NCBI GenBank assembly: GCA_964106645.2
Contig: OZ067043.1
DNA length: 64,000 nt
DNA from: Podarcis pityusensis
Taxonomy: Eukaryota
Reading direction: 5' to 3' (one strand)
The notes beneath the pieces are model-generated. The model did not search any database and was not told the origin of the DNA. It was given only the letters and a program-made list of their open reading frames with translations. Of the stretch, positions 10,079 to 62,213 are shown one piece after another (within the stretch, counting starts at the first letter, position 1; every line of letters begins with the position of its first letter). The translations under genes and the position numbers were made by a program.

Positions 10079-12206
10079 GTGAGCCTGCTTGGGTGTTTAA
10101 TCTTGGATCTGTATTCTTCCAGACTCAGGGGATGACAACCTGGTGCCCTCCAGATTTCTGGACTGCAACTCCCATGAGCCCCAGTTACGATTTAGAATGT
10201 CTTGATAGCACCAGAATGGTTGCTTTTGTCCTGGACAATAGTTTTATCTGCAGCTCCTCAGCCCAACCTAACACTGCAGAACTTACAAAAGAACTCTGCT
10301 CATAACTGCCCTATATGCTGGAAAAAAGTGTAAAATGTAATGTGTGAACGGTCAAGTGCAGACTTGTTTTGCTTCCAGTATATAGAAAAATATAGATATA
10401 GATTCTCACATTATGTTTTGCACACTTTCTGTTAGTTATTAATTATATTGGAAAAGGTTACACTTTCAGTAGCCTCAGAGTGCTGTTTATGCTGTGATGT
10501 AGGCCAAAATAGTGGTATTGAGAGGCCAGGAATTATGGTGGCTTTTGCAGGCAAACTCCTTCTCTCCACGATGAACCATTTACTAGGCAGATGATTAATT
10601 TGAAAAATTGCTATGTTGGAAAAAGTTCCCTTGTAGCTATTAGAGTCACAGTAGCAGGATAAATGTTTTCCTGTGCTTGCAGCATGCCCTGTAGGGCCCA
10701 CTTCAGCTGTGAGGGGCTTAAATCATAAATAAAACTCTTCTCATATGTGTAGAGGGGGAGGATAAATTGAGGAAGTGTCCTTTTCATGCATTATTGGTCC
10801 TGCTTGAATTGTTATCTTCTTTTGCCCCTGACCTCCCCTTGCAGCAGCATATCTCCCTTGATTCAGGGGATGTGATACAAGCATTGCCCAGAAGGCAAGA
10901 TTATAGAGGCCAGGGAGAAGCACTGGCTGGCTAAAGGCTAGCATGTGAAAGAGGCACCAAAGCCTAGCAAGGTTTGGAAAGACTGTTAACCACACACTGC
11001 TGATCCGCAGTATGTTTTCCAAGAACTCCCAGCTGGGTGAGTGCTTATGAGGCTGTTAGCCTGCCAGGACCCAAAATCCCACATGCAAGCCCATTTCTAA
11101 TTGGGCTCTTGTTTTCATAGATCATTGTGACAGCAGCCATTTTTTTCTGGAGTGTGGTACGAAAGAGGACCATGGACAGCATTAGCTACAATAGTATCAG
11201 GGCTGGTGGGGGTGCTGAGTGTTCTCACTCTTCTAGGGGGCTTCAGTCACACTTTAAAGAACACACTATCTCTTAAAAGTGGTCATTAGATACAATTCTG
11301 ACTTGCAACCTTCCAATCCCTCTCTCTCAAATTCCAGTTTCAAGTAAACATCAGCTGCATTTACCATGATTAAGTAGCTATTAAGGAAGGAACTAATTTT
11401 GGTATATGGATTTTTCTTGGGGATTCTGCTGCCTTGTACCCCTGTCTAAACCATTCATCTTTGTTAAGTCCAGGGCAGGCTGAGTAACAGGAGAGGATTT
11501 TCCCACTAGCGCAGGGAGAAGTTGTACTGAAGCAATACTCACTCAGAAAGTTGGAAAATAAAGAAATAACCCTTTGTTGTTTTTTGTCCTTGTCACTACT
11601 GGAGAAAATTTGAACTTTCAGGCCTAGCAAGCACTTTGATACCACAGGCACTCTGTTAGGGCCATGGCTGTGTGGTGCGGAAGAAGAAATCTAGAATAGT
11701 AGGTAGATGATTCAGGAGCAGTCTTGTGTATCTAAGCTGAGTAGTGGAAGAGCAATATAGTGCTGAGATGTGGGGGTATACTGAGACATTGAGAAGGCAT
11801 TCTTCATCACAACACAGATCACAGTTTTTCCTCTCAGCCTAATCCTGTGAGTTCAAGAACTCAGCTAATTGAACTGGGTTTGCAGCTGGCTGAAGCAGCA
11901 AGAAGGAAAGGGAAAGCAGTTTGGATCAGCCCTTGAGGCTATTTGTGTGCTCATTAATTTGGGTAGAATTGCATGTTATGTTTCTCACACAAACCTAGCC
12001 ACAAAACCGCTGCATAAAGGACATGCTCAAAGCCATAGGTAATTCAAAGGTCTGCATACTTAATACTTCAGCCACAGGGATGGAACAGCATTAGGAGTAC
12101 CTGCTCAGGGCAAAACCTAGCTCATAAGCAAAATAAGAAACACTACAGTTCCTAGCCTCAACTTCAGGACCTCAGGGGTAGTAGTAGAGAAAGTGTGGTC
12201 AAGCAT

Positions 12207-12961
12207 TGAGTGGCGAGTTCCCGCCCCCCACCAAGGACACCAGACACCAGAATTTAAGGCTAAATGGGTGAATTAGGCCACAACTTTATTGAATTCAGGA
12301 ATGAGAGGCATTGGCTTAGGCATTGGTCCTATTGACTATCCGGCTCCAGCCAATTTGCTGGAGACACGGGAAGGGTTAACACCAAAGAGGGGGAGTCTCC
12401 TGCTGAGGCACGTCAACTAGGAGCTCCCCCGGATCACCGCGGGGGTGTGCCTTAGGCCCACACCTCCATAGGCTTCGGACAGGGCCATGCCCCCGGAGTC
12501 CTTTATCGGACTACCCTTCGTTCTCTGGGGGGAGGTGATGGCGTTCCTCCCCACACACACATCCTCTTAACCCCTTCTTACCAATGCCTAACCGCCAATG
12601 CCGAGGAGTTGTGACGAGTTGCTACGAGGTAGGCGAAAAACCAAATGGCTGTAAATTGCCAATTGGGAAAAATTCCTACCATGCCCCTTGCGGCGACAGA
12701 CCAAAGTCCATAGCAAAATCAGATACCTACCTAAAGGGAGGGAGGGTGGGAAAACGTGGGGGCTAGCCGGCAAAAGAGGGCGAGCCCCGGCGCGCCGGCC
12801 CTAAATAGGGCAGGCCACGCCCCCCCAGCCACCCAATTGGCTGGCTGGGTGGACGACGCGGCCGGGATTCCCCTACTCTCGCGGGGGCTGAAACCAGCCC
12901 CCGCTCACGTGGGGTGGGCGTGAAGCCCGCAACCCCACCTCCTGGGCAGGCCGGAAGTGGC
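12207..12961 (-). mobile_element. CpG-rich solo LTR-like repeat (possibly DIRS/Ngaro-type or ERV/Gypsy)
   Basis: Abrupt GC/CpG island in an AT-rich intron. On the - strand in order: ETS, E-box, kB, CCAAT, GC boxes, TATTTA (12802-12807), AATAAA (12285-12290), GU-rich tract. No convincing TG..CA plus TSD; AGTGGC occurs at both ends. Confidence 0.6.
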
Positions 12962-13614
12962 TCTGTGCCAGCAGCCTGCAGAGGGTGTAGCTGCGCTAGA
13001 ATTGGGAGCAGAAAAGGGATTTGCCCAGCAAAACAGCTGCCTGGTGCTGCCAGTGCTGGTTATGAGCCCTTGTGGATCTCAAGTCAGTGTGTCATGACTT
13101 GCACATGGAGTGGAAGTGGCTAGCTCATTGTTGCTCTTGATAGGTCTGGATGTCAAACCACAGAGAGAGCATCTTTAGCTCCTACAGCACACTGAACCTT
13201 GGAGAGAATTTACAGCCAGGGATTAATAGAATTAAATAAGCACAATCACGCCAGCATGTTAATTATTTATCTACACTCTTGCTGTGCTAGAGCAATGCTT
13301 GTATTTGAGCTCCTCCTGTTGGACTGTTGCCTGTACTGCAGACAGGCTGTGCCCACAAGATACTCAAAGCAGGTGGTCTGCCAGACTGTGGATAAATATT
13401 AGGCAACTTTGAGGTGGGGCCAGTCTTCCTCCTCGGCTCAGTGAGTGAGCAAGTGAGATTCCTTCTGTCACCGACTAGCAAGCTGGAGTGCTTCCTCCTC
13501 CCCCCCCCCCCCGCACGGTCGCATGCAAATAGGAAGCAGATGCTGTGTGTTGTGCAGTAAGTGAATTAGCTAGAGCTCTTTTCCTTGTATCTGTCAATGA
13601 GGTGAGAAGTCTAG

Positions 13615-13650
<36 letters not shown>
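13615..13650. repeat. (TGC)12 trinucleotide microsatellite
   Basis: Perfect repeat read directly. Confidence 0.95.
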
Positions 13651-13652
<2 letters not shown>

Positions 13653-13812
13653 ATGATCCTTTCTAGGCTTCCACGTTGCCCCTTCTCTTGGGTTCAAAAT
13701 ATATTCAGGTCTTTGAAACAATTGCAGCATCATGCTCTGACAGATACATTTACTGGAATGTTATACGGTGGTGAGGAACAAGTTTTAGCTTTACTGACCA
13801 GCCATGTAACGT

Positions 13813-17420: not shown

Positions 17421-17481
<61 letters not shown>
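17421..17481. repeat. Compound (GT)n(GA)n microsatellite
   Basis: Read directly. Confidence 0.95.
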
Positions 17482-17488
<7 letters not shown>

Positions 17489-30826: not shown

Positions 30827-31902
30827 GTGGCAATAATATTGGTGACAGAAACCCACAAATCCATCTCACATAAAATGCAAGCATACTTTAGCATCCATAA
30901 AATGTGCAATTATTACTCTGTTATTGACTTGCTTCTATTTCCCCCCTGCACCTGAAGGCTTAGGCTAGCTACAACATATTAAAATGAACCTTCAAGGTAG
31001 AATATCTAACTGAACCACACAGCAAGATGAAATATCCCAGCACCATGCATACACAATTCAGGAAACTGTTATGCCTAATCTAAACTTACTGCTCAAACAT
31101 TCATATGCTGCTACAAGTATGTGCATTCACAACACGAAAACATATGGGACACCATTCTGCACAAACATACATATGCCATCTATTTACAGAGCATGACACA
31201 CCATCTGCATGTGCACTCATATAATCTCTTGCTGCACTTCAGGATGGAAAGAAATGACTGCTTCAGCCACAAACATTAGTTCACTAGGAATCAGCATCTT
31301 ATCTGGCCAGTGATTTATCTCTTGTAGCTGAGTGGGAACTATTACTGAACAAACCACTTCATCACTGCAGCTCTCACGAACTCCTTAGAAACGGTATTTA
31401 ATGCTCTCCCTTCATGCTCTGGTTCAGATGGGAGTGGTGTATAATTAACACACGCTCTCTCCCTATTAAAACCCTGTTAGGAATTTGACATGAGCAGCGG
31501 CAAGGAGATGTCCTGCTGTAGAATTCTTAGCTGTCAGACATCACATTTGTTGTTTGTTGGCATGTTTTTGGTTGTGCTGGTTTGTGCACTGGGAGCAGGA
31601 CCAAGTTATACACTTCAAAAAGCCTCCACCAAGGAAGATTTGGGTTTGCTGGTTTTGTAAGAAGCAACATTACTCAGAAAGTGTGCACAGGGTGGGGGCA
31701 GAGAGACCATAGTGCAGAATCCTCATTCCTTTGCTCTATTCAGGTGCGTTAACCTGCCTCTCTGAGGGTTCTTCGGAGAAAGTGTGAACTTGAGGGTTAT
31801 CAGTCCCTGCAGTATGCGGTGGGTTGGGACAGGGCTTGGTGAAGGCTTAGAACTGACTCTGAAGGAAGTACTACTTCATGTTTTTGTGCCATGCTTTTAC
31901 AG

Positions 31903-32188
31903 CGCCGGTGTGGGCAGGACAGGCTGCTTCATTGTAATCGATGCCATGCTTGAGAGGATGAAGCATGAGAAGACAGTGGACATCTATGGGCATGTGACAT
32001 GCATGCGCTCACAAAGAAACTATATGGTGCAGACTGAGGATCAGTATATCTTCATCCACGAGGCCTTGCTTGAAGCAGCCACCTGTGGAAACACTGAGGT
32101 GCCTGCACGCAACCTCTTTGCTCACATCCAGAAGCTGAGTCAGGTACCTCCGGGTGAGAGTGTCACAGCAATGGAACTGGAGTTTAAG
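31903..32188 (+). CDS. PTPRF: PTPRF D1 C-terminal and linker exon ([10 protein letters not shown]...MVQTEDQY...MELEFK)
   Basis: CAG/GTGAGC; 286 nt, phase 2/0; completes HCSAGVGR and the Q-loop. Confidence 0.97.
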
Positions 32189-34208
32189 GTGAGCAGAAGA
32201 GCATTTGCAATTTTTCCACATGTCAACACACAGAGTGATCAAGGGGCTGCTCAGCTGGAACTGGCACCCCTGCCTGTCATCCCCCACAGATCTGTGAGCA
32301 ACTATGAAGAGTTGATTCTTGGGTTGAAGGGAGATTTTCTAGGGATAATGATTCTTTTGTAAATTTCTAAACCAGGTAGGAAGTGATTAAAATATATTTG
32401 CATTGCAGAGTGAGTGTCCTCGACATTTCCCTCCTAGAACGGCAGCTTCTGGCAAGGATATAAAAAAGCAGATTGATATGAAGTTCTCAGCAACATTGCT
32501 TTGCAGAGTGGCTGGAGCTGCATCCAAAATCAGATGCAGATTGGGCATTAGTGGTAATTGATGTCACTATGAACAACTTCGCTGGAAATGCTTCTAGTTT
32601 AAATACTTGAGATGTCAACAGCTCCAGTGCCCCCTGCCTTGCTCCACTTCTACTTCTCCCTAGTATGGAGGAGGAGAGAGGGAGGGCCACTGTCGGGCTT
32701 AGCTGGCATATTGCCTGGTGCAATTTAAGGAAGTAAAGTCCCCTGGTTGTCACAATTGTCATTGCTTGCCAGCACCAACACCCACACTTGTGTCGGCTTC
32801 ACACCAATTTTTTCTTACAGCCTTGATACAGGCTGCAATTTTTGCTAATGCCCACATTCTCCAATGATGTGCATTTGTACAGCAAAGGCTGGGCGGGGGG
32901 GGGGGGGGGAATAGTTCCTGTGGGGAAGCAGTGAAGCATGTAGAGTGTGAAACAGACTGCGGAAGCCCCACTCTACCCTGGGAATAGCCTCTTGCAAAAC
33001 AGCAGCCATGGAGTCAAAATATTGACTTGCTGTGGAAACGGCACAAAGCAAAACAGCATTGCCTCTTTACTCTGAATACTGCTCACACTGGAGGTTTTTT
33101 TGGGGTGGGGATTGGACAAGGCTCTCACCTCCACCTGCACCTATTCCCAATCCCCAATACTTCCCCAAAGGAGAAGTGAACAAGTGGGGGGTGCCATGCT
33201 GCTGCTCCTGGATTCTGACATCACTGCTCAATGAACGTGAGAGAGGTAATGGCAGCAAGCAAGAGCAGCTGCTGTCACTACTTGCTAGATGGCTTGCTTT
33301 GCCCACCACTGGCTTGCTGTCCTCTGCGGGTGAGTGAGCAGAGTGGTAACAGCCTCGCAATGAGAAGAGGAGGAGTTACTGCCGCTTGCTTACTCACTCC
33401 AGAAGAGCCAAGGGGCAAGCAGGTGGCAGTGGATGCTGCTCTTCCTTGCGGCCGCCACCACTCCCAAGAGAGATGATAGAGGAGACTGGTTGAATTGATA
33501 CTGGTGAGGAGAGTGAGCAGCTGTCACTCAGTAGTAGTGGGAACTAGGCCTAGCCTGCTCCCAGTGCCAACCAAAGGGAAAGGCAGACATGGAAGCAGGT
33601 GGCAGCGTCTGCTTCTTACTGCTGATGCTTATTGCCTGGAAAGTGGAGGCAAGTAGGCAGTGATAATGAGGAGGAACAACAGGCCTCTGGCAGTCAGTAG
33701 TAGACCTCAACAGATGTCAGCAGCTCAGATTGCAGCCCTGTTTCTGAAAGCAACTTGGTTGTATGTGCCATGCCATACATCAGAGCAGGAGCCACAGAGT
33801 GAAAGAAGTGGATGGGTAGAGCTGCAGTAAGAATTAAGGGGGAAAGGAGTGGAAAGTGAGTTACATGGAGCAAAACAGATTTCTAAGTCCTCATACAATT
33901 AGAAAGAAACTGGGCAGCACATCCATAAAGGGTCCCCTAACTCTTTCTGGTAGAGAATGTAAAAAATGGTCCTTTTCCTGCCAAGCAAGGAAGCTGTCCT
34001 GCAAGGAGATGAAGCTACTAGGCTAAACAAGGGCTTATCTCCTGGAGCTGTGGAATTAGCACTGAGCAGCTGGGAATGGGTGGCATTTATAGAGGACCTG
34101 TTGGCAGCAACTCTTCCTAGAGCTGCTTAGAAGTATACATGGGGCTTGCTTTCTCCTTCTGAGTAGGTCTAATGAATGGGAGGCACTGCTGGGCTCAACC
34201 TGAGTTTC

Positions 34209-34210
<2 letters not shown>

Positions 34211-34289
<79 letters not shown>
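34211..34289. repeat. Compound (CT)n(CA)n microsatellite
   Basis: Read directly. Confidence 0.95.
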
Positions 34290-34292
<3 letters not shown>

Positions 34293-34726
34293 CAAGGTCC
34301 TGGAGGAGGGGGTGTCCCAATATTAAAGTCCCCTTGAGCTGGATGTTTTCTAAGAAGCAGCCTCTGAAGATAGGGAGCTGTGGAGTTTAACCCAGTTGAG
34401 TCCCAGAGTCCCACTCCCTTTCTTCTTCAGAGGTTTGGGTCCTGATGAGTGCTAACAAACGTCTTAAAATACCAATCTCACAAATTTTGGTATTCTGTGC
34501 AATGTCCTGTGCTGAGGCTCCCTCTAAGCATAGGATATTTCAGTCATGGGCCAGAAGTCACCAGCATGAGACAGAAGGTAAGGGTTGCTCAGAAGAGCAA
34601 GGTACAGGCTTCTAAGCAGGTCAGGAATGATGTTAGAATGAGTGTTAGTAAGGTGCTAATGAGTAAAAGCAAATAACGAGCTCCCAGGGGAAGAATACTA
34701 TAGAGTGACCATAAGTGCCCATCTAA

Positions 34727-37256: not shown

Positions 37257-37344
37257 TGTTGTTTAGTCGTTTAGTCGTGTCCGACTCTTCATGACCCCAT
37301 GGACCAGAACATGCCAGGCACTTCTGTCTTCCACTGCCTCCCGC
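37257..37344 (-). mobile_element. Severely 5'-truncated BovB-like RTE insertion (88 bp)
   Basis: Near-identical to 62080-62166; 11-bp TSD AATTTCTTAGT (37246-37256, 37345-37355). Confidence 0.85.
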
Positions 37345-37613
37345 AATTTCTTAGTACCTTTGTGTTAATACTCTACTTTCATCAAGGGACCTCCGATAGC
37401 CTTATTGATCTCATAGTGGAACAGGTGGTTGTGGGCAAGGACTGCAGAAGGAAGCAGCTAGATGCTATCAGAGATCCAGATGTGTGGCACAAGTCCTCCT
37501 CTCCTCCCCCAGCAAGCCCTTTATCTAGTTCTCTAGACCTAACTGCTAAGCATCTCCTTTCCATCCCAGAAGTGTCAGTCATCTACCACTCTGAAATGTT
37601 TGATTCCTTGCAG

Positions 37614-37740: not shown

Positions 37741-38661
37741 GTAAGCTAGCACCCTCAGCTACCAAGTGATGTCTATTCTAGGGCTGTTTCTCCAGTGAGA
37801 TTCCAGGTGTACAGCCCAGTCTTGGGAGCAAATATTTTGCTTTCATTCTCCTAATGCTAGAGGGGACTGAAGTCACTGCTAAAGGCGAAGCTCATTGCAT
37901 TGAAGTCTTCAGACTGTAACTGTTTTGTGGGAGGGATTCAGTTGCATACGAGTAAATTTAGGTTTGTGCTACTGAAGTGAATTAAAACTCTTGTACAACA
38001 ACAAAAATGACTTTTTTGTGGTGATGGGAAAATGCACCAGAAATATAACAACTGATTGACATGAAGTCATATAACCTCCCCACAAACAAATCAGGTGATT
38101 GCTGAATAAACAGTGAACACTGTATAACCTCCTTGTCAGCTTTATTTAAATAAATCAGAATGTATGCTCAATAAGCACGCAATCTGCAGGAGTCATCCAT
38201 CTCCAGCTACATGGCTGACTAGCTCTGCTGGGACCCAGTTGGTGAACAAGTATCCTCTGCAACCATCAATGTACTTGATCCCCCTGGCCCGCTCAAACTT
38301 TAAGAGGAGCTAGCAGCTTCAGGTTTCTTGCTTTGCCCAGAGCCAGGAAAAAAGGGGCATTTGGGCTAGAACTGAGGTTTTCTACCTAGTAACTTGGCAA
38401 GGAAGAGCAGGCTGATTGCTAATCAGGAAGTCATGGGAAATGGAGGCGTGCAGGAGCAAGGGGAGTCTAATCAATCACATCATGGCAGGAGGGAAGAAAC
38501 AGATCAGTGTCTTGCTGCGCATATTAGAGCATGGAGTTGTGTGGGTATTGTACTACCCAACAGGACAAGATGTCAAAAGGCACCTCACTCTAAAATATTC
38601 AAGCTTCAGTCACATCACACATTTTGACTGTAACAATTCTGACTCTTCCTTTGCTTTTCAG

Positions 38662-38787
38662 GAGAAATGCCACCAGTACTGGCCAGCAGAGCGTTCTGCT
38701 CGGTACCAGTACTTTGTGGTGGATCCCATGGCTGAATACAACATGCCCCAGTACATTCTGCGTGAGTTCAAGGTCACTGATGCCAGG
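38662..38787 (+). CDS. PTPRF: PTPRF D2 exon ([42 protein letters not shown])
   Basis: CAG/GTGAGT; 126 nt, phase 0/0. Confidence 0.97.
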
Positions 38788-39173
38788 GTGAGTACTGCAC
38801 AGCCTACCCTGAATTCCCCAATATTTATTTCCCATTACTGCTCAGAAATTGCAAGTAGCACAGGACGGAAGGGCTTTATCTTCAACGTGCATCTGATTGT
38901 CCATTGCTTTATCACCCTCTGCATTGGTGTTACTGTGTGTCAAGTGGCTGAGACAGCTGGAAAGCAGAAGCAAGGATTTCAGTTGTGTTTATATCTACTA
39001 CACCCTGCTATATAAAACAAAATACTCACTAAGGGGCAAAAGAAATCTGCTTAGGTCGGCTGGGCCTCCCCTCCTCAAGGCTTTTCTGGCACCAGTAGGA
39101 AAGGCCTGACCATGAAGGCTGCCGTGTATTTTGAGAGGATGCAGTGACTATATCTCCCTTTAACCACAACTAG

Positions 39174-42690: not shown

Positions 42691-43055
42691 AGCGGATAAA
42701 CCTGTAGTTACCCTGGCAGGAGCTCCAAAAGACCACAACTCTGTGGGAGTGAATCCTACCTGTCCATGTGTTAGAAAGCAGAACTCAAACAAAATTATGT
42801 GAAAGCGAAATGCTCTTGCTTGGCCGCTCACACAGACAAGAAAAAGGAGGAACGGCTGGAACTGTTCGCCTTTCAGTAGAAGAAGGGTGTGCCATGAATC
42901 ATTTCCACATGGACAATTTGGCTGCTGAAACAATAGCACTTACATGATGTATCAATAGAATACGGCGTTCTTGATAGGATAGTATGGAAGTGCTACTGTT
43001 TGTAATACACTACATGTGTCATATATGGGAATGTTGAGGGTGGCAGGAGAGGATA

Positions 43056-43251
43056 CAGTGGTACCTCAGGTTACATATGCTTCAGGTTACAGACTCCGCT
43101 AACCCAGAAATATTACCTCGGGATCAGAACAGAAATCGTGCGGCGGCTGCGGGAGGCCCCATTAGCTAAAGCAGTGCTTCAGGTTAAGAACAGTTTCAGG
43201 TTAAGAACGGACCTCCGGAACGAATTAAGTACTTAACCCGAGGTACCACTG
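43056..43251. mobile_element. Tc1/mariner (Tigger-like) MITE
   Basis: TIR CAGTGGTACCTC...GAGGTACCACTG with TA TSD. Confidence 0.9.
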
Positions 43252-43318
43252 TATATTGATTCCTTCCTAACTTGCGCTAGCAAGTTTCTTCACTTAGTAG
43301 AGTACATACCCCCTTTAT

Positions 43319-43841: not shown

Positions 43842-44610
43842 TCATACCACCAGTAGCATGAGTTCTTGGCACCCGGGGCCAGCAAGCCACCAACACTGCC
43901 AATGCACCCCTCCACCAAAGCCAAGCAGGGCTGCGCAACCTGCCCACCCACATAGTCATCACCCAAGTGAGCCTCGCTCTTATCTCCCTGCTGCTGCTGC
44001 TACCACCATCTTCCCCCCTGCCCCCAGCTAAATTTACAAACCCTTTATTTAAAAAAGAAAATAGGGATTTACTGTCCAAAACATCACTTAACAGCTTGAA
44101 AAATCTGCATTTTGGCCCCATGTTTACATGCTAAACTTTATCCTAATATTGTTCTAGACATGCACACAACCCTATGCACATACTACATTTATGGAAACAG
44201 GAGGTATTCTCAGAAAGTGTGGGGCAGTAGGAAAAGTTACTGCCGCTCCACACAGCAAGTTGTGTTTCCTTTGTAGTAAGGCAGCTACACAAAACTGCAG
44301 CTACAAAACCTGTGCAAAAGGTTTCAGGGCACAAAAGGGTTTGGATAGGGGAGGTCTCTTCTGCCTTCTCTCCCACAACACTAATACACTGCCTGCCTCT
44401 TGCTATCAAGAGAGAAAGAGAATAGCATCCATGTTGAAAGAAAGGAAACAAACCTTACTTAAATGTTGTTGGTTTTTTTGGAAACTATCCACCATGCTAA
44501 GTGCAAAATTATTCATGGGGTAATACAGGTGCCTGAGAAACAAACTTAACGCTCCCTTTCCCTCCAGATTCCACTGCCAAAGATCTGGAAAGCTACTTTA
44601 TGGGCATGTA

Positions 44611-44822
44611 CAGTGGTACCTCAGGTTAAAGACGCTTCAGGTTACAGACTCCGCTAACCCAGAAATAGTACCTCGGGTTAAGAACTTTGCTTCGGGATAA
44701 GAACAGAAATTGTGCGGCAGCGGGAGGCCCCATTAGCTAAAGTGGTGCTTCAGGTTAAGAACAGTTTCAGGTTAAGAACGGACCTCCAGAATGAATTAAG
44801 TTCTTAACCAGAGGTACCACTG
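44611..44822. mobile_element. Tc1/mariner (Tigger-like) MITE, same family as 43056-43251
   Basis: Same TIRs, TA TSD, highly similar interior. Confidence 0.9.
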
Positions 44823-45429
44823 TATGTAAATGCCATGGGTAGTGTTCAATGAAGTTTTACTTGGAGCAGACCTACTGAAATTAATGGACCTAACTTAAGT
44901 CATGTTCATAAATTTTCATGTGTCTTCTCCAAGTAAAACTTAGTTGAATTACTAAGTAAAGGCAGCTTAAGATGATCATCACCTCCCCTTAGTCAGGATC
45001 CTTCATACATGCATAAACCCACTTAAAAGATCTGGAAACAGCACAAGAGGCGGGGGCAACAACGTGCTTTGCACAGTTTGGGAAGTTTCTAGTAAAGCCA
45101 TGCAAATCTCAAGAAAATGAGCCAAGCCACACATAGCTTGACTGATGCTCCCTATAAAGCGGATACATTTTCCTATATAAGCACTGTTTAGAATCAATTT
45201 TTTTTTTTTTTTTTTTTTTGTACTTGCAAAAGTTGTAGGAAAGCTATGCTAGCATGTTGGAAGTTTTCTTGTTATGTATATTTACAGGCAAAATTCCTGT
45301 AGAGAACAAGCAGATTTTCATTTTCTACTGTTGACCCCCCCTCATGAAGGTCAACCACCTTCAATCTGGAATCCTCACTACCTGTTTTCAGCCCTGAAAT
45401 AAGTCTAATAGAGTGTGTTTAAGAATCTA

Positions 45430-56383: not shown

Positions 56384-58231
56384 TGTCAGGTGTGCATGCA
56401 GGAGCCAGGCCCTGTGACCAATAGGACTCTGCAGGACTGGAGCCTTCCTAAGTTGGATACTAGCCCGGTGCCTTTGGGACTGGGGGGTGCGCTGCCTGAT
56501 GTCCGGGATGGGTGTGTGTATCATCGCAGCCGGCTCTAAATTCCAGAGGGGCTGCTCCGGACCCAGGTCCTTGAGCAGTGCCATGATGCGTGAACTGCCG
56601 GACATGGGGGATACGCGAAGACACTGCAGCTATTGGCCTGAGCTTTCTGGTAGCCAGGGGTTCGGGCGGACATTAAGAAGTACGTGCGGTCCTGTGAGAC
56701 TTTTGATCGGACCAAGGTGCCACGGCAGAGACCCTTGGGGCTCCTCCAGCCATTACCCCCCCCCCCCACAGGCCATGGTCAACACTTTCTATGGACTTCA
56801 TCGTGGACCTCCCTGTGTCCAAAGGACAGTTGGTCATTCTGGTGGTGGTGGATTCACTCACCAAGATGGCACACTTCATCCCAGCTCTAAGCCTCCCCAC
56901 AGCGCAACAGACAGCCCACTTGTTTCTTGAACCCATGTTCCGGCTACATGGGCTCCCAGATGCGGTGATCTCCGACAGGGGTCCCCAGTTCATGTCCCAG
57001 TTCTGGGCGGCCTTCCTCAAGGGACTGAGTATTGAGAGGCGCCTCTCTTCCGCATACCACCCTCAAACACCTGGCCAGACGGAGAGGGTTAATCAAGTCC
57101 TGGAGCAATATCTCCACTGGTTCCTGAGCTATCATCAGGATGATTGGGTGGACCTTCTGCCACTGGCTGAGTTTGCCTATAACAACACCTGCCATGCCTC
57201 CACGGGACAGAGCCCTTTCTACGCTAACTACCGGCGGTGTCTCTTGTGCCTTCCGCCAATGATCGGGTCTCCCACATCCAGGAAACACAAGCTGACCTGA
57301 TACGGCACCTAGCGAGAGCCAAGGCAGATTATAAGGCGCAAGCGGATTGACAGCGCCAGCAGGGGCCCACGTTCCAGGTTGGGGATAAGGTCTGGCTGTC
57401 GTTGGAGCACCACCGCACTGGACGTCCGTCGGCTAAGGTGGACCAGGGACCATTCACCACCCTGCAGCAGATCAATCCGGTCGCCTACAAGTTGGAACTT
57501 CCCCCCTCCCTGAAGATCCACCCAGTGTTTCACGTATCCCAGCTGAAGCATTGCCCCACCGCCAGTCCAGGTTGACGGCCATGATGAGTTCCAGGTCGCC
57601 CAGATTCTGGACTCGAAATGGCTCCGTGGCAAGCTCTACTGTCTAATTGACTGGGTGGGCTACGGGCCAGAGGAACAATCGTGGGAGCCGGCCGACTTAG
57701 TGCACATGCCCACCAAAGTACGGGCCTTCCATCGGAGGTTCCCAGACAAGCCTGGGCCATGGCCGGGGATGGAACCCCATTTTCCTATGGGGGGGGAGTA
57801 CTGTCAGGTGTGCGTGCAAGAGCCAGGCCCTGTGACAATAGGACTCTGCAGGACTGGGGCCTTCCTAAGTTTGTTCTGAAGAGGCAAGGCGCGGCCACAC
57901 AGATGAGGCCAATTGGTAACTCACAGCACCTGGTGGCAAGAGCAGGGAAGGGATATAAGGTCAGCATTTTCCCTTCAGCTCTTTGCCACAACAACACGTT
58001 CCCTGCCTTTCTGCGTTTGACTCCTTGACTCTCGGACCCTTGACTTTGTGACTCCTTGCTTCCTGACCGTCGGACGTTTGGCTTCTTGACTCCCGGATCT
58101 CTAACCCTAGGAATCTAGGCTTTCTGACTCCTGTCTTCTGGACTCCCGTTCCTGCTCCCACCCCGCTATCTTGCCCCCGGTCCCAACATCCCCAGCCGGG
58201 ACTTTGATCGCCCGTGAACCGGACCGTGACA
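56384..58231 (+). mobile_element. Gypsy/Ty3 chromovirus-type LTR retrotransposon, deleted and decayed
   Basis: TGTCA...TGACA termini, 5-bp TSD AATAC (56379-56383, 58232-58236), PPT at 57789-57801, 3' LTR 57802-58231, 5' LTR remnant 56384-56454. Confidence 0.93.
56455..57790 (+). pseudogene. Integrase (HHCC + DDE core) and C-terminal chromodomain remnant of the Gypsy element
   Basis: CHDA*TAGHGG..., MDFIVDLP...ISDRGPQF...YHPQTPGQTERVNQ, IHPVFHVSQLK, and EFQVAQILDSKW...WVGYGPEEQSWEP; multiple stops and frameshifts. Confidence 0.9.
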
Positions 58232-58510: not shown

Positions 58511-59117
58511 TAGACCCTCCAAGTGTCCCTATTTTCCAGGGACAGTCCCGCATTTACAGAAGTCATCCTGGTTTCTGATTTTATCCCTGAATGTTCCACT
58601 TTTCCTTAGGATGTCCCTATTTTAATCGGATAAATGTTGGCAGCTATGGAGTTATGCAACCCCCCAAGCCAAGAAGATAAGTAACTATACAGCTTTTAGA
58701 AGATATTGGAAGGCAGCCATGTATAGGGAAGTTCTTAACCTGAGGTACCACTTTAGTTAATGGGGCCTCCCGCTACCGCCGTGCGATTTCTGTTCTCATC
58801 CTGTAGCAAAGTTCTTAACCCAAGGTACTATTTCTGGGTTAGCAGAGTCTGTAACCTGAAGCGTCTGTAACCCAAGACCTCAGTTTAAGAACAGCCCTGT
58901 TTACAAACTATTCAGTTTACGAACTCCACAAAACCGGAAGTAGTGTCCCGGTTTGCAAACTTTACCTCGGTCTAAGAATGGAAGCCGAAGGGTGGAAGGG
59001 CACTGGTGGCGGGAGGCCACATTAGGGAAAGCGCACCTCGGTTTAAGAACGTGTTCGGTTTAAGAACAGACTTCTGGAACGGATTAAGTTTGTAAACCAA
59101 GGTACTGTACCACTGTA
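58511..59117. mobile_element. Composite of three truncated DNA-transposon MITEs (hAT-like + two Tigger-like)
   Basis: 58511-58728 has TGTCCC-rich subterminal repeats; 58729-58875 is the reverse complement of the 44611 family; 58876-59117 is a related family ending GTACCACTG-TA. Confidence 0.7.
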
Positions 59118-62079: not shown

Positions 62080-62213
62080 TTGTTGTTGTTGTTTAGTCGT
62101 GTCTCACTCTTCGTGACTCCATGGACCAGAGCATGCCAGGCACTCCTGTCTTCCACTGCCTCCCGCAGTTTGGTCAAACTCAAGTTGGTAGCTTCGAGAA
62201 CACTGTCCAACCA
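62080..62213 (-). mobile_element. BovB-like RTE LINE 3' fragment
   Basis: Peptide LDSVLEATNLSLTKLREAVEDRSAWHALVHGVTKSETRL with a (CAA)n tail, resembling the BovB C-terminus. Confidence 0.85.

Follow-up and report, generated by a model that had tools for sequence, protein, structure and literature searches.

A credible candidate for a poly(A)-tail-gripping RNA hairpin in an abundant LTR-like repeat of a lizard genome

A 53-nucleotide RNA hairpin is encoded on the minus strand of the 64,000-nucleotide stretch of lizard DNA analyzed here (hereafter the window), inside a 757-nucleotide repeat unit, and the segment that encodes it is the most widely shared part of the repeat family to which that unit belongs. 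Judged by its predicted structure and position, the hairpin is a credible candidate for an RNA stability element that grips the poly(A) tail of an amniote mobile element. We tentatively favor a reading in which it is a strand-specific module in the R-like part of a recently active and abundant LTR-like retroelement repeat, where it would most likely act as a single-domain ENE. Triple helices of the ENE type have been shown to shield certain RNAs from decay, namely viral lncRNAs, MALAT1 and the RNA of a plant retrotransposon. An ENE is a stem-loop whose U-rich internal loop, bordered by G-C pairs, clamps poly(A) through five U.A-U triples and A-minor contacts (PMC7583470). More than 200 ENEs have been predicted and approximately 10 tested, with examples in RNAs of transposable elements (TEs) from plants, fungi and slime mold, as well as in a stickleback retrovirus (PMC7583470). 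The criteria by which ENE architecture is judged below are taken from three papers (PMC7583470, PMC12501189, PMC13541005).

The initial annotation of this DNA proposed the hairpin from its letters, and the proposal stands: the letters are exactly those it gave, and both the minimum free energy (MFE) and the centroid structures computed with RNAfold are the structure that it described. Specifically, a G/C-rich lower stem of 6 base pairs (GGUAGG/CCUACC), which opens with two G-C pairs, leads into an internal loop made of AAUUUUUC on the 5′ side and UUUUUCG on the 3′ side. Above this loop, an upper stem of nine positions with one U.U (CCAA.UGGC/GCCA.UUGG) is capped by an apical loop of 8 nucleotides, AAUUUACA. 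ENEs carry tracts of about five U residues on both strands of the loop, and here two U5 tracts oppose each other in the MFE and centroid structures alike. The C-G pair that closes the upper stem directly adjoins the 3′ U5, one extra C separates this pair from the 5′ U5, and on the lower side the stem is set off from the U tracts by AA and CG spacers. The hairpin has a predicted free energy of -21.7 kcal/mol, a value equaled by 4 of 200 shuffled sequences, and it is unchanged within larger folds of 436 and 522 nucleotides, where its pair probabilities are 0.95-1.0. Because T5 tracts flank the upper stem on one strand, rather than T5 on one side and A5 on the other, the segment is no simple DNA palindrome, which favors a strand-specific RNA reading.

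Only in part do these features justify the label of ENE architecture that the initial annotation also applied. The U-rich internal loop between two stems, the G/C-rich lower stem, the location within a repeat and the placement on the sense strand upstream of a poly(A) site all accord with it. The spacers beside the U tracts weaken the case, as does a search of Rfam 15, which yields no match at E <= 10 either for 12 kb of sequence or for the 161-nucleotide region alone; the hairpin is not a recognizable member of the curated ENE models. Interrupted A-minor stems occur in the lower domains of double ENEs, and bulges are also present in double-domain ENEs (PMC7583470, PMC12501189, PMC13541005).

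Judged from its sequence, the unit has the layout of a Pol II promoter and a poly(A) site of canonical type, with a long R-like region that contains the hairpin (Table 1). Indeed, the TATA-like box (near 12815) and the AATAAA (12290-12285) that had been placed on the strand of the hairpin are both there, on the minus strand. Transcription would start near 12787, which puts the hairpin approximately 105 nucleotides downstream of the predicted start site.

Table 1. Coordinates of the hairpin, the long-range helix and the repeat unit that carries them
Feature	Position	Strand	Basis
LTR-like repeat unit, 757 nt, lineage-specific insertion	12206..12962	-	Empty-site contigs of two other organisms; depth jump
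CCAAT-box palindrome CCAATTGG, upstream of TATA-like box	12833..12840	-	Sequence, motif count
TATA-like CTATTTAGG	12809..12817	-	Sequence; bin 12786-12829 is one of the family's conserved blocks
ENE-like hairpin	12628..12680	-	RNAfold; inside the two highest-depth bins of the repeat family
Hairpin, lower stem	12675-12680/12628-12633	-	RNAfold
Hairpin, 5′ U5	12668-12672	-	RNAfold
Hairpin, upper stem	12658-12666/12641-12649	-	RNAfold
Hairpin, apical loop	12650-12657	-	RNAfold
Hairpin, 3′ U5	12636-12640	-	RNAfold
Single-stranded linker from hairpin to long-range helix, 12 nt	12616..12627	-	436-nt and 522-nt folds
Long-range helix, 5′ arms (9 + 9 + 12 bp)	12580..12615	-	BLAST inverted repeat; folds
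Long-range helix, 3′ arms	12277..12327	-	BLAST inverted repeat; folds
AAUAAA poly(A) signal	12285..12290	-	Sequence; no well-supported variant among those listed at these positions
Predicted cleavage region (CA 12270-12269) and GU-rich downstream element UGGUGUCUGGUGUCC, U5-like tail	12225..12270	-	Usual poly(A)-site layout

In linear sequence the hairpin is 338 nucleotides from AAUAAA, so its proximity to the poly(A) site rests on a predicted long-range helix. BLAST of the unit against the window reveals an internal inverted repeat, in which four occurrences of CCAATGCC form the two inverted pairs that make this helix. In the 436-nucleotide fold (12700-12265), the 5′ arms pair with the 3′ arms to give 30 base pairs with probabilities of 0.96-1.0, the same helix is predicted in the 522-nucleotide inferred R, and the hairpin stays an independent domain. 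The helix would close off the roughly 330 nucleotides between the hairpin and AAUAAA. Across the end of the helix, the base of the hairpin would thereby come within approximately 20 single-stranded nucleotides of the predicted cleavage site.

How, then, might the hairpin grip a poly(A) tail? Cleavage would be expected approximately 15-20 nucleotides past AAUAAA, and the new tail would begin approximately 8 nucleotides from the 30-bp helix. With the hairpin 12 nucleotides from the other side of this helix, the tail could fold back into the U-rich internal loop, where the 3′ U5 (12640-12636) would pair with five A residues by Watson-Crick interactions and the 5′ U5 (12672-12668) would engage them by Hoogsteen interactions. 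Further A residues, located upstream, would pack onto the lower-stem G-C pairs. A triplex formed in this manner would be expected to slow deadenylation of the element RNA.

The same helix admits a different interpretation, one we consider doubtful, in which a conserved RNA structure of the R region performs another job. By occluding the sequence immediately following AAUAAA in the repeat's 5′ copy, the helix and the hairpin might regulate poly(A)-site use. Alternatively, the U tracts, held single-stranded, may serve as an upstream enhancer or as a docking place for U-binding proteins such as Fip1, hnRNP C or HuR, or the structure may act in strand transfer, dimerization or export as in retroviral R. 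In retroviruses, poly(A) signals are regulated or juxtaposed by structures such as the poly(A) hairpin of HIV-1 and the RexRE fold of HTLV-1, which brings AAUAAA and the cleavage site together; U-rich upstream elements are known to enhance 3′ processing. As in those retroviral structures, the long R fold of the lizard unit would bring distant parts to a poly(A) signal whose surroundings are partly paired. The outermost 3′ arm (12285-12277) begins at the last A of AAUAAA, the whole of R is strongly structured (z = -5.14 for the 436-nucleotide fold), and the family's conserved blocks coincide with the hairpin, the helix arms and the poly(A) signal, all of which agree with such a role. However, none of these jobs calls for a pair of equal U5 tracts opposed between two stems, the specific signature of an ENE. 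The HIV-1 and HTLV-1 structures lack an opposed U5 internal loop, and no Rex- or Rev-type protein is known for the lizard unit.

The boundaries and age of the unit can be read from the DNA of other organisms. In DNA contigs from two related lizards (runs X1 and X3), position 12205 is joined straight to 12963 with 0 shared letters, and thus the unit comprises exactly 12206-12962 and has no target-site duplication (TSD). The 757-nucleotide unit is therefore a lineage-specific or polymorphic insertion. Summed contig depth in the same two runs is 77 and 98 in the flanks and reaches up to 443,000 within the unit, and the likeness of X1 contigs to the unit spans values from more than 99% to less than 90% (334/751/1213/866 contigs across that range). 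The family, with thousands of copies, must accordingly be very abundant and include both young and old members. The copy in the window is young and near an active master, given that two related organisms lack the insertion and that hundreds of contigs show a likeness of 99% or more. A (CAG)n microsatellite is located just upstream of the unit (13617-13660, minus strand).

Depth within the unit is far from even. At a likeness of at least 80%, the bins that contain the hairpin (12610-12697) have the top depth in both X1 and X3, exceeding other parts of the unit by 2.6- to 17-fold. The bins that hold AAUAAA and the 3′ helix arms (12258-12345) rank second in X3 and third in X1, and in X1 the bin with the 5′ arms (12566-12609) is slightly deeper than those of AAUAAA and the 3′ arms. 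The interior of the domain closed by the helix is mostly lower in depth and peaks locally at 12434-12477. The best-supported variants listed include none within 12513-12681 other than a one-base deletion at 12590, located on the 5′ side of the 12-bp helix and present in approximately 18% of the depth; a further 202 variant-letter and 51 indel rows, the majority, lie outside this selection, which makes it weak evidence.

Diverged members of the family show which features of the hairpin persist. Three subfamily fragments, each represented by a loose-end consensus, share the 3′ half of the hairpin and differ in its apical part. The letters of the lower stem are kept in all three, and the 5′ U tract reads U5 or U6 in two fragments, whereas the third has a shortened U4G. 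Refolding recovers this layout in the fragments; the loop is larger, and the upper stem contains a 2x2 mismatch. This pattern represents conservation of architecture and not covariation, because the subfamily changes that are visible add mismatches and do not compensate for one another.

Could such a shape have arisen without function? A liberal ENE descriptor (a lower stem of 5 bp or more, a U5 tract on each side, an upper stem of 6 bp or more allowing one mismatch, and spacers of no more than 3 nucleotides) finds only this site in the 64-kb window, against an expectation of 0.24 per dinucleotide shuffle, and 19% of the shuffled windows contain at least one site. When the descriptor is made as strict as the hairpin itself (a lower stem of 6 bp or more and an upper stem of 8 bp or more), the expectation drops to 0.025 per 64-kb window, and 2.5% of shuffled windows contain a site. 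A relaxed structure descriptor returns approximately 30 chance hits in the window that are unrelated to the hairpin. No further copies of the hairpin are present in the 64-kb window by exact or 3-mismatch search, by BLAST with a word size of 9, or by the strict and relaxed structure descriptors. Thus, a single window would rarely contain the ENE shape, yet a genome of this size should contain hundreds by chance. Shape alone consequently proves nothing, and the case must rest on context and conservation.

These expectations bear on an explanation that we judge unlikely, namely that the hairpin is a look-alike carried as a neutral passenger, and that its wide sharing reflects the history of the family, with its mosaic subfamilies and recent bursts, instead of selection on the U-rich loop. 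In agreement with it, the single hairpin has a z score of only -2.46, the subfamily variants weaken the upper stem, and the RNA reads described below reveal no strand-specific expression. Yet the hairpin segment exceeds the rest of the unit in depth by the margin given above, and youth alone does not explain its abundance, because the contigs range so widely in likeness. Moreover, the 5′ U tract and the lower stem persist where the apical part has been replaced, and the location of the hairpin near the poly(A) site by way of the 30-bp helix would have to be an independent coincidence. If the hairpin proves not to bind poly(A), it would serve as a useful caution that the ENE shape arises by chance at a measurable rate, and that conservation within a repeat family is no proof of function.

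Conservation could also act on the DNA, an explanation we regard as improbable. The unit is studded with CCAAT/ATTGG motifs of the NF-Y type (9 in 757 nucleotides versus approximately 1.5-1.8 expected, and no more than 7 in any of 300 shuffles), and LTRs with arrays of NF-Y sites are known. The core of the hairpin might be one such site, its stems a by-product of inverted boxes. Consistent with this idea, the palindrome CCAATTGG of the promoter occurs again in the upper stem (12659-12666), TGCCAA repeats are also present, and GCCAAT is kept, at a shifting position, in the apical part of all three subfamily variants. However, six of the nine CCAAT/ATTGG motifs are partners in predicted stems, which is enough by itself to explain the enrichment, and most of the boxes are downstream of the predicted start site. 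Furthermore, the T5 tracts and the GGTAGG/CCTACC stem fall outside any CCAAT site, and T5 tracts repeated on one strand are not expected of a protein-bound palindrome.

The class of the element is a separate matter. The initial annotation called the repeat LTR-like, a description that holds only loosely: the ends of the unit read AG...AA on the sense (minus) strand, and neither the TG...CA termini nor the 4-6 bp TSD of an integrase-type solo LTR or ERV is found in the sequence or at the empty site. In addition, the end of the unit (12206) is joined head-to-tail to a unit start by 2 reads in each of two RNA runs. The lack of a TSD, the lack of TG..CA ends and the end-to-start joints together argue against an ordinary solo LTR made by an integrase. 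The pattern better fits a split-repeat unit of a tyrosine-recombinase element (DIRS/Ngaro/PAT-like) or tandem LTRs, and the end-to-start joint would be expected equally from tandem LTRs. No internal region or recombinase gene of the element was seen. The last 25 nucleotides were considered as a primer-binding site and rejected as such, given that the empty site places these bases inside the inserted unit; judged by eye, they also do not seem to fit a tRNA 3′ end. The 9-bp arms with their 8-bp spacer were likewise set aside as a tyrosine-recombinase core site, as they are approximately 280 nucleotides from the unit ends.

In one bulk and one single-cell RNA library, reads from the family are sparse. 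They scale roughly with DNA abundance over U3 and R, and form no pile of read starts or ends. Their orientation ratio is only about 1.3:1 in a library that we take to be stranded, since an unrelated partial match in it reaches approximately 10:1. From reads of this kind, drawn from unspecified tissues and from an RNA organism (C) without this insertion, no LTR-driven sense transcript is seen. Two RNA peaks within the unit were rejected as expression of the element, because they are partial matches of about 50 nucleotides to other abundant transcripts. In one bulk RNA run, approximately 300 reads match only 12275-12326 and approximately 85 match only 12795-12849, at approximately 80-85% likeness, before running into unrelated sequence, and these reads are strongly strand-biased. 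One or more abundant transcripts of the related lizard contain sequence distantly related to the blocks near the poly(A) site and the TATA-like box.

The single-domain ENE of the KSHV PAN RNA type is one of the known systems closest to the lizard hairpin, if the latter is an ENE. Both are stem-loops with five U residues on each side of the loop and a G/C-rich lower stem that could offer A-minor contacts, and each precedes a canonical poly(A) site in a unit of Pol II type, predicted from sequence in the lizard. The lizard hairpin differs in having 2-nucleotide spacers (AA and CG) by its lower stem, an extra C before its upper stem and no Rfam match. It is also far from AAUAAA in the linear sequence, and would be close only via the predicted long-range helix.

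Tycowski and colleagues are reported to have described, in 2016, ENEs in LTR retrotransposons and further TEs from plants and fungi. To our knowledge, the stickleback retrovirus is the only animal mobile element with a predicted ENE. As predicted for the lizard unit, the motif resides in the 3′ part of the retroelement RNA in plant and fungal TEs such as Arabidopsis Evade/Copia93 (PMC12501189) and in the stickleback retrovirus (PMC7583470), and some ENEs of LTR retrotransposons are inside the LTRs (PMC13541005). The expected pay-off is protection from deadenylation and higher mobility; the Evade ENE blocks deadenylation by CCR4a and raises mobility (PMC12501189). In Evade, G-C pairs are positioned directly beside the U tracts, where they are essential (PMC12501189), whereas the lizard hairpin has spacers on its lower side. 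Furthermore, most plant TE ENEs are double-domain, unlike the single lizard hairpin, and the lizard element resides in an amniote and looks different in class, with no TSD and no TG..CA ends.

The blunt-ended MALAT1 and MEN-beta triple helices also deserve comparison, being vertebrate (and also lizard) RNA structures in which U-rich motifs clamp an A tract. Many MALAT1-like loci are reported for Anolis (Zhang et al. 2017, cited in PMC7583470). In contrast to MALAT1 and MEN-beta, the lizard hairpin lacks a genomic A-rich tract, C/G interruptions of its U tracts and a downstream tRNA-like structure, and has a normal AAUAAA instead. ARAGORN detects no tRNA-like (mascRNA) structure, such as would direct RNase P processing, in 11500-13500, and neither an A-rich tract in the sequence nor an Rfam hit is present. 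The absence of the A-rich tract and of the tRNA-like structure rules out a MALAT1-type module.

On paper, then, the lizard hairpin resembles known ENEs; it would represent a new host group, with the long-range delivery helix as its own twist. The initial annotation had gone further in suggesting a possibly undescribed ENE class, and this is not borne out, because ENEs in TE RNAs, including that of the stickleback retrovirus, are already described (PMC7583470). Only the group of hosts would be new here. In its fullest form, which we hold to be rather unlikely, the proposal is that a single-domain ENE-type clamp in an active or recent amniote retroelement is delivered to the tail by a conserved 30-bp helix, is present in thousands of copies through lacertid genomes, and possibly acts as a portable stability module for host transcripts that end in such repeats. 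If true, a working ENE in a young lizard repeat would extend this strategy of host evasion to amniote transposons, and the thousands of copies would constitute a natural variant series for structure-function work. It would also prompt the question of whether host genes become more stable when they end in a repeat of this type.

Searches beyond the repeat family give no support to the further suggestion of a class shared across vertebrate retroelements. The proposed relative with a GGAAGG...CCUUCC stem in CR1 elements is not found in the window, and the only match of this kind in the public collections scanned is antisense within a long ORF of an unrelated metagenome contig. This locus (L002) resembles GGAAGG...CCUUUCC, but was rejected as a relative of the hairpin since it is antisense inside a 636-aa ORF. 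A two-anchor hairpin pattern recovers three metagenome and three bacterial-MAG loci from public collections, none of them like the element by BLAST, and the viral collection contains nothing with either of two hairpin patterns. Four of the recovered loci were dismissed as a single unrelated family (L003 522-573, L004 1219-1269, L005 2581-2632 and L006 749-800). They have near-identical stretches of approximately 80 nucleotides between AGGAATTTTTC and GGTTTTTCGCCT, show no convincing ENE fold and are unlike the lizard element by BLAST; their contigs are from one ENA metagenome, one 'uncultured bacterium' MAG and two Deinococcota MAGs. Used as protein queries for copies, the ORFs that span the hairpin gave no word-sharing candidate, and nine ORFs had no exact entry. 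A scan for bacterial promoters and terminators was empty and is irrelevant here.

The remainder of the window holds several other features. A 169-aa frame at 56791-57297 (plus strand) encodes an integrase core domain (Pfam rve, E = 1.2e-9) closest to Ty3/gypsy-type integrases, and is an old LTR-retrotransposon fragment unrelated to the 757-nucleotide unit. As a route to lizard contigs this fragment leads only to amphibian and metagenome eukaryote sequences, its best relatives being just 64-65% identical. Open frames at 31784-32359 and 38416-39012 (plus strand) match the protein-tyrosine-phosphatase domain (Pfam PF00102, E = 2.5e-19 and 1.5e-4), and are exons of a receptor-type PTP gene on the plus strand, which places the repeat unit upstream of these exons and on the opposite strand. 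Short SINE-like repeats with 84-92% identity occur in direct and inverted orientation (37266-37349, 62088-62171, 43054-43263, 44609-44834 and 58731-58872), including two tandem-adjacent copies approximately 1.56 kb apart at 43-45 kb. Finally, the dinucleotide microsatellite arrays at 17421-17483 and 34211-34296 are mutually complementary and appear as many inverted-repeat pairs, and the array at 17.4 kb translates as Cys-Val and then Glu-Arg repeats, corresponding to TG- and then GA-type sequence.
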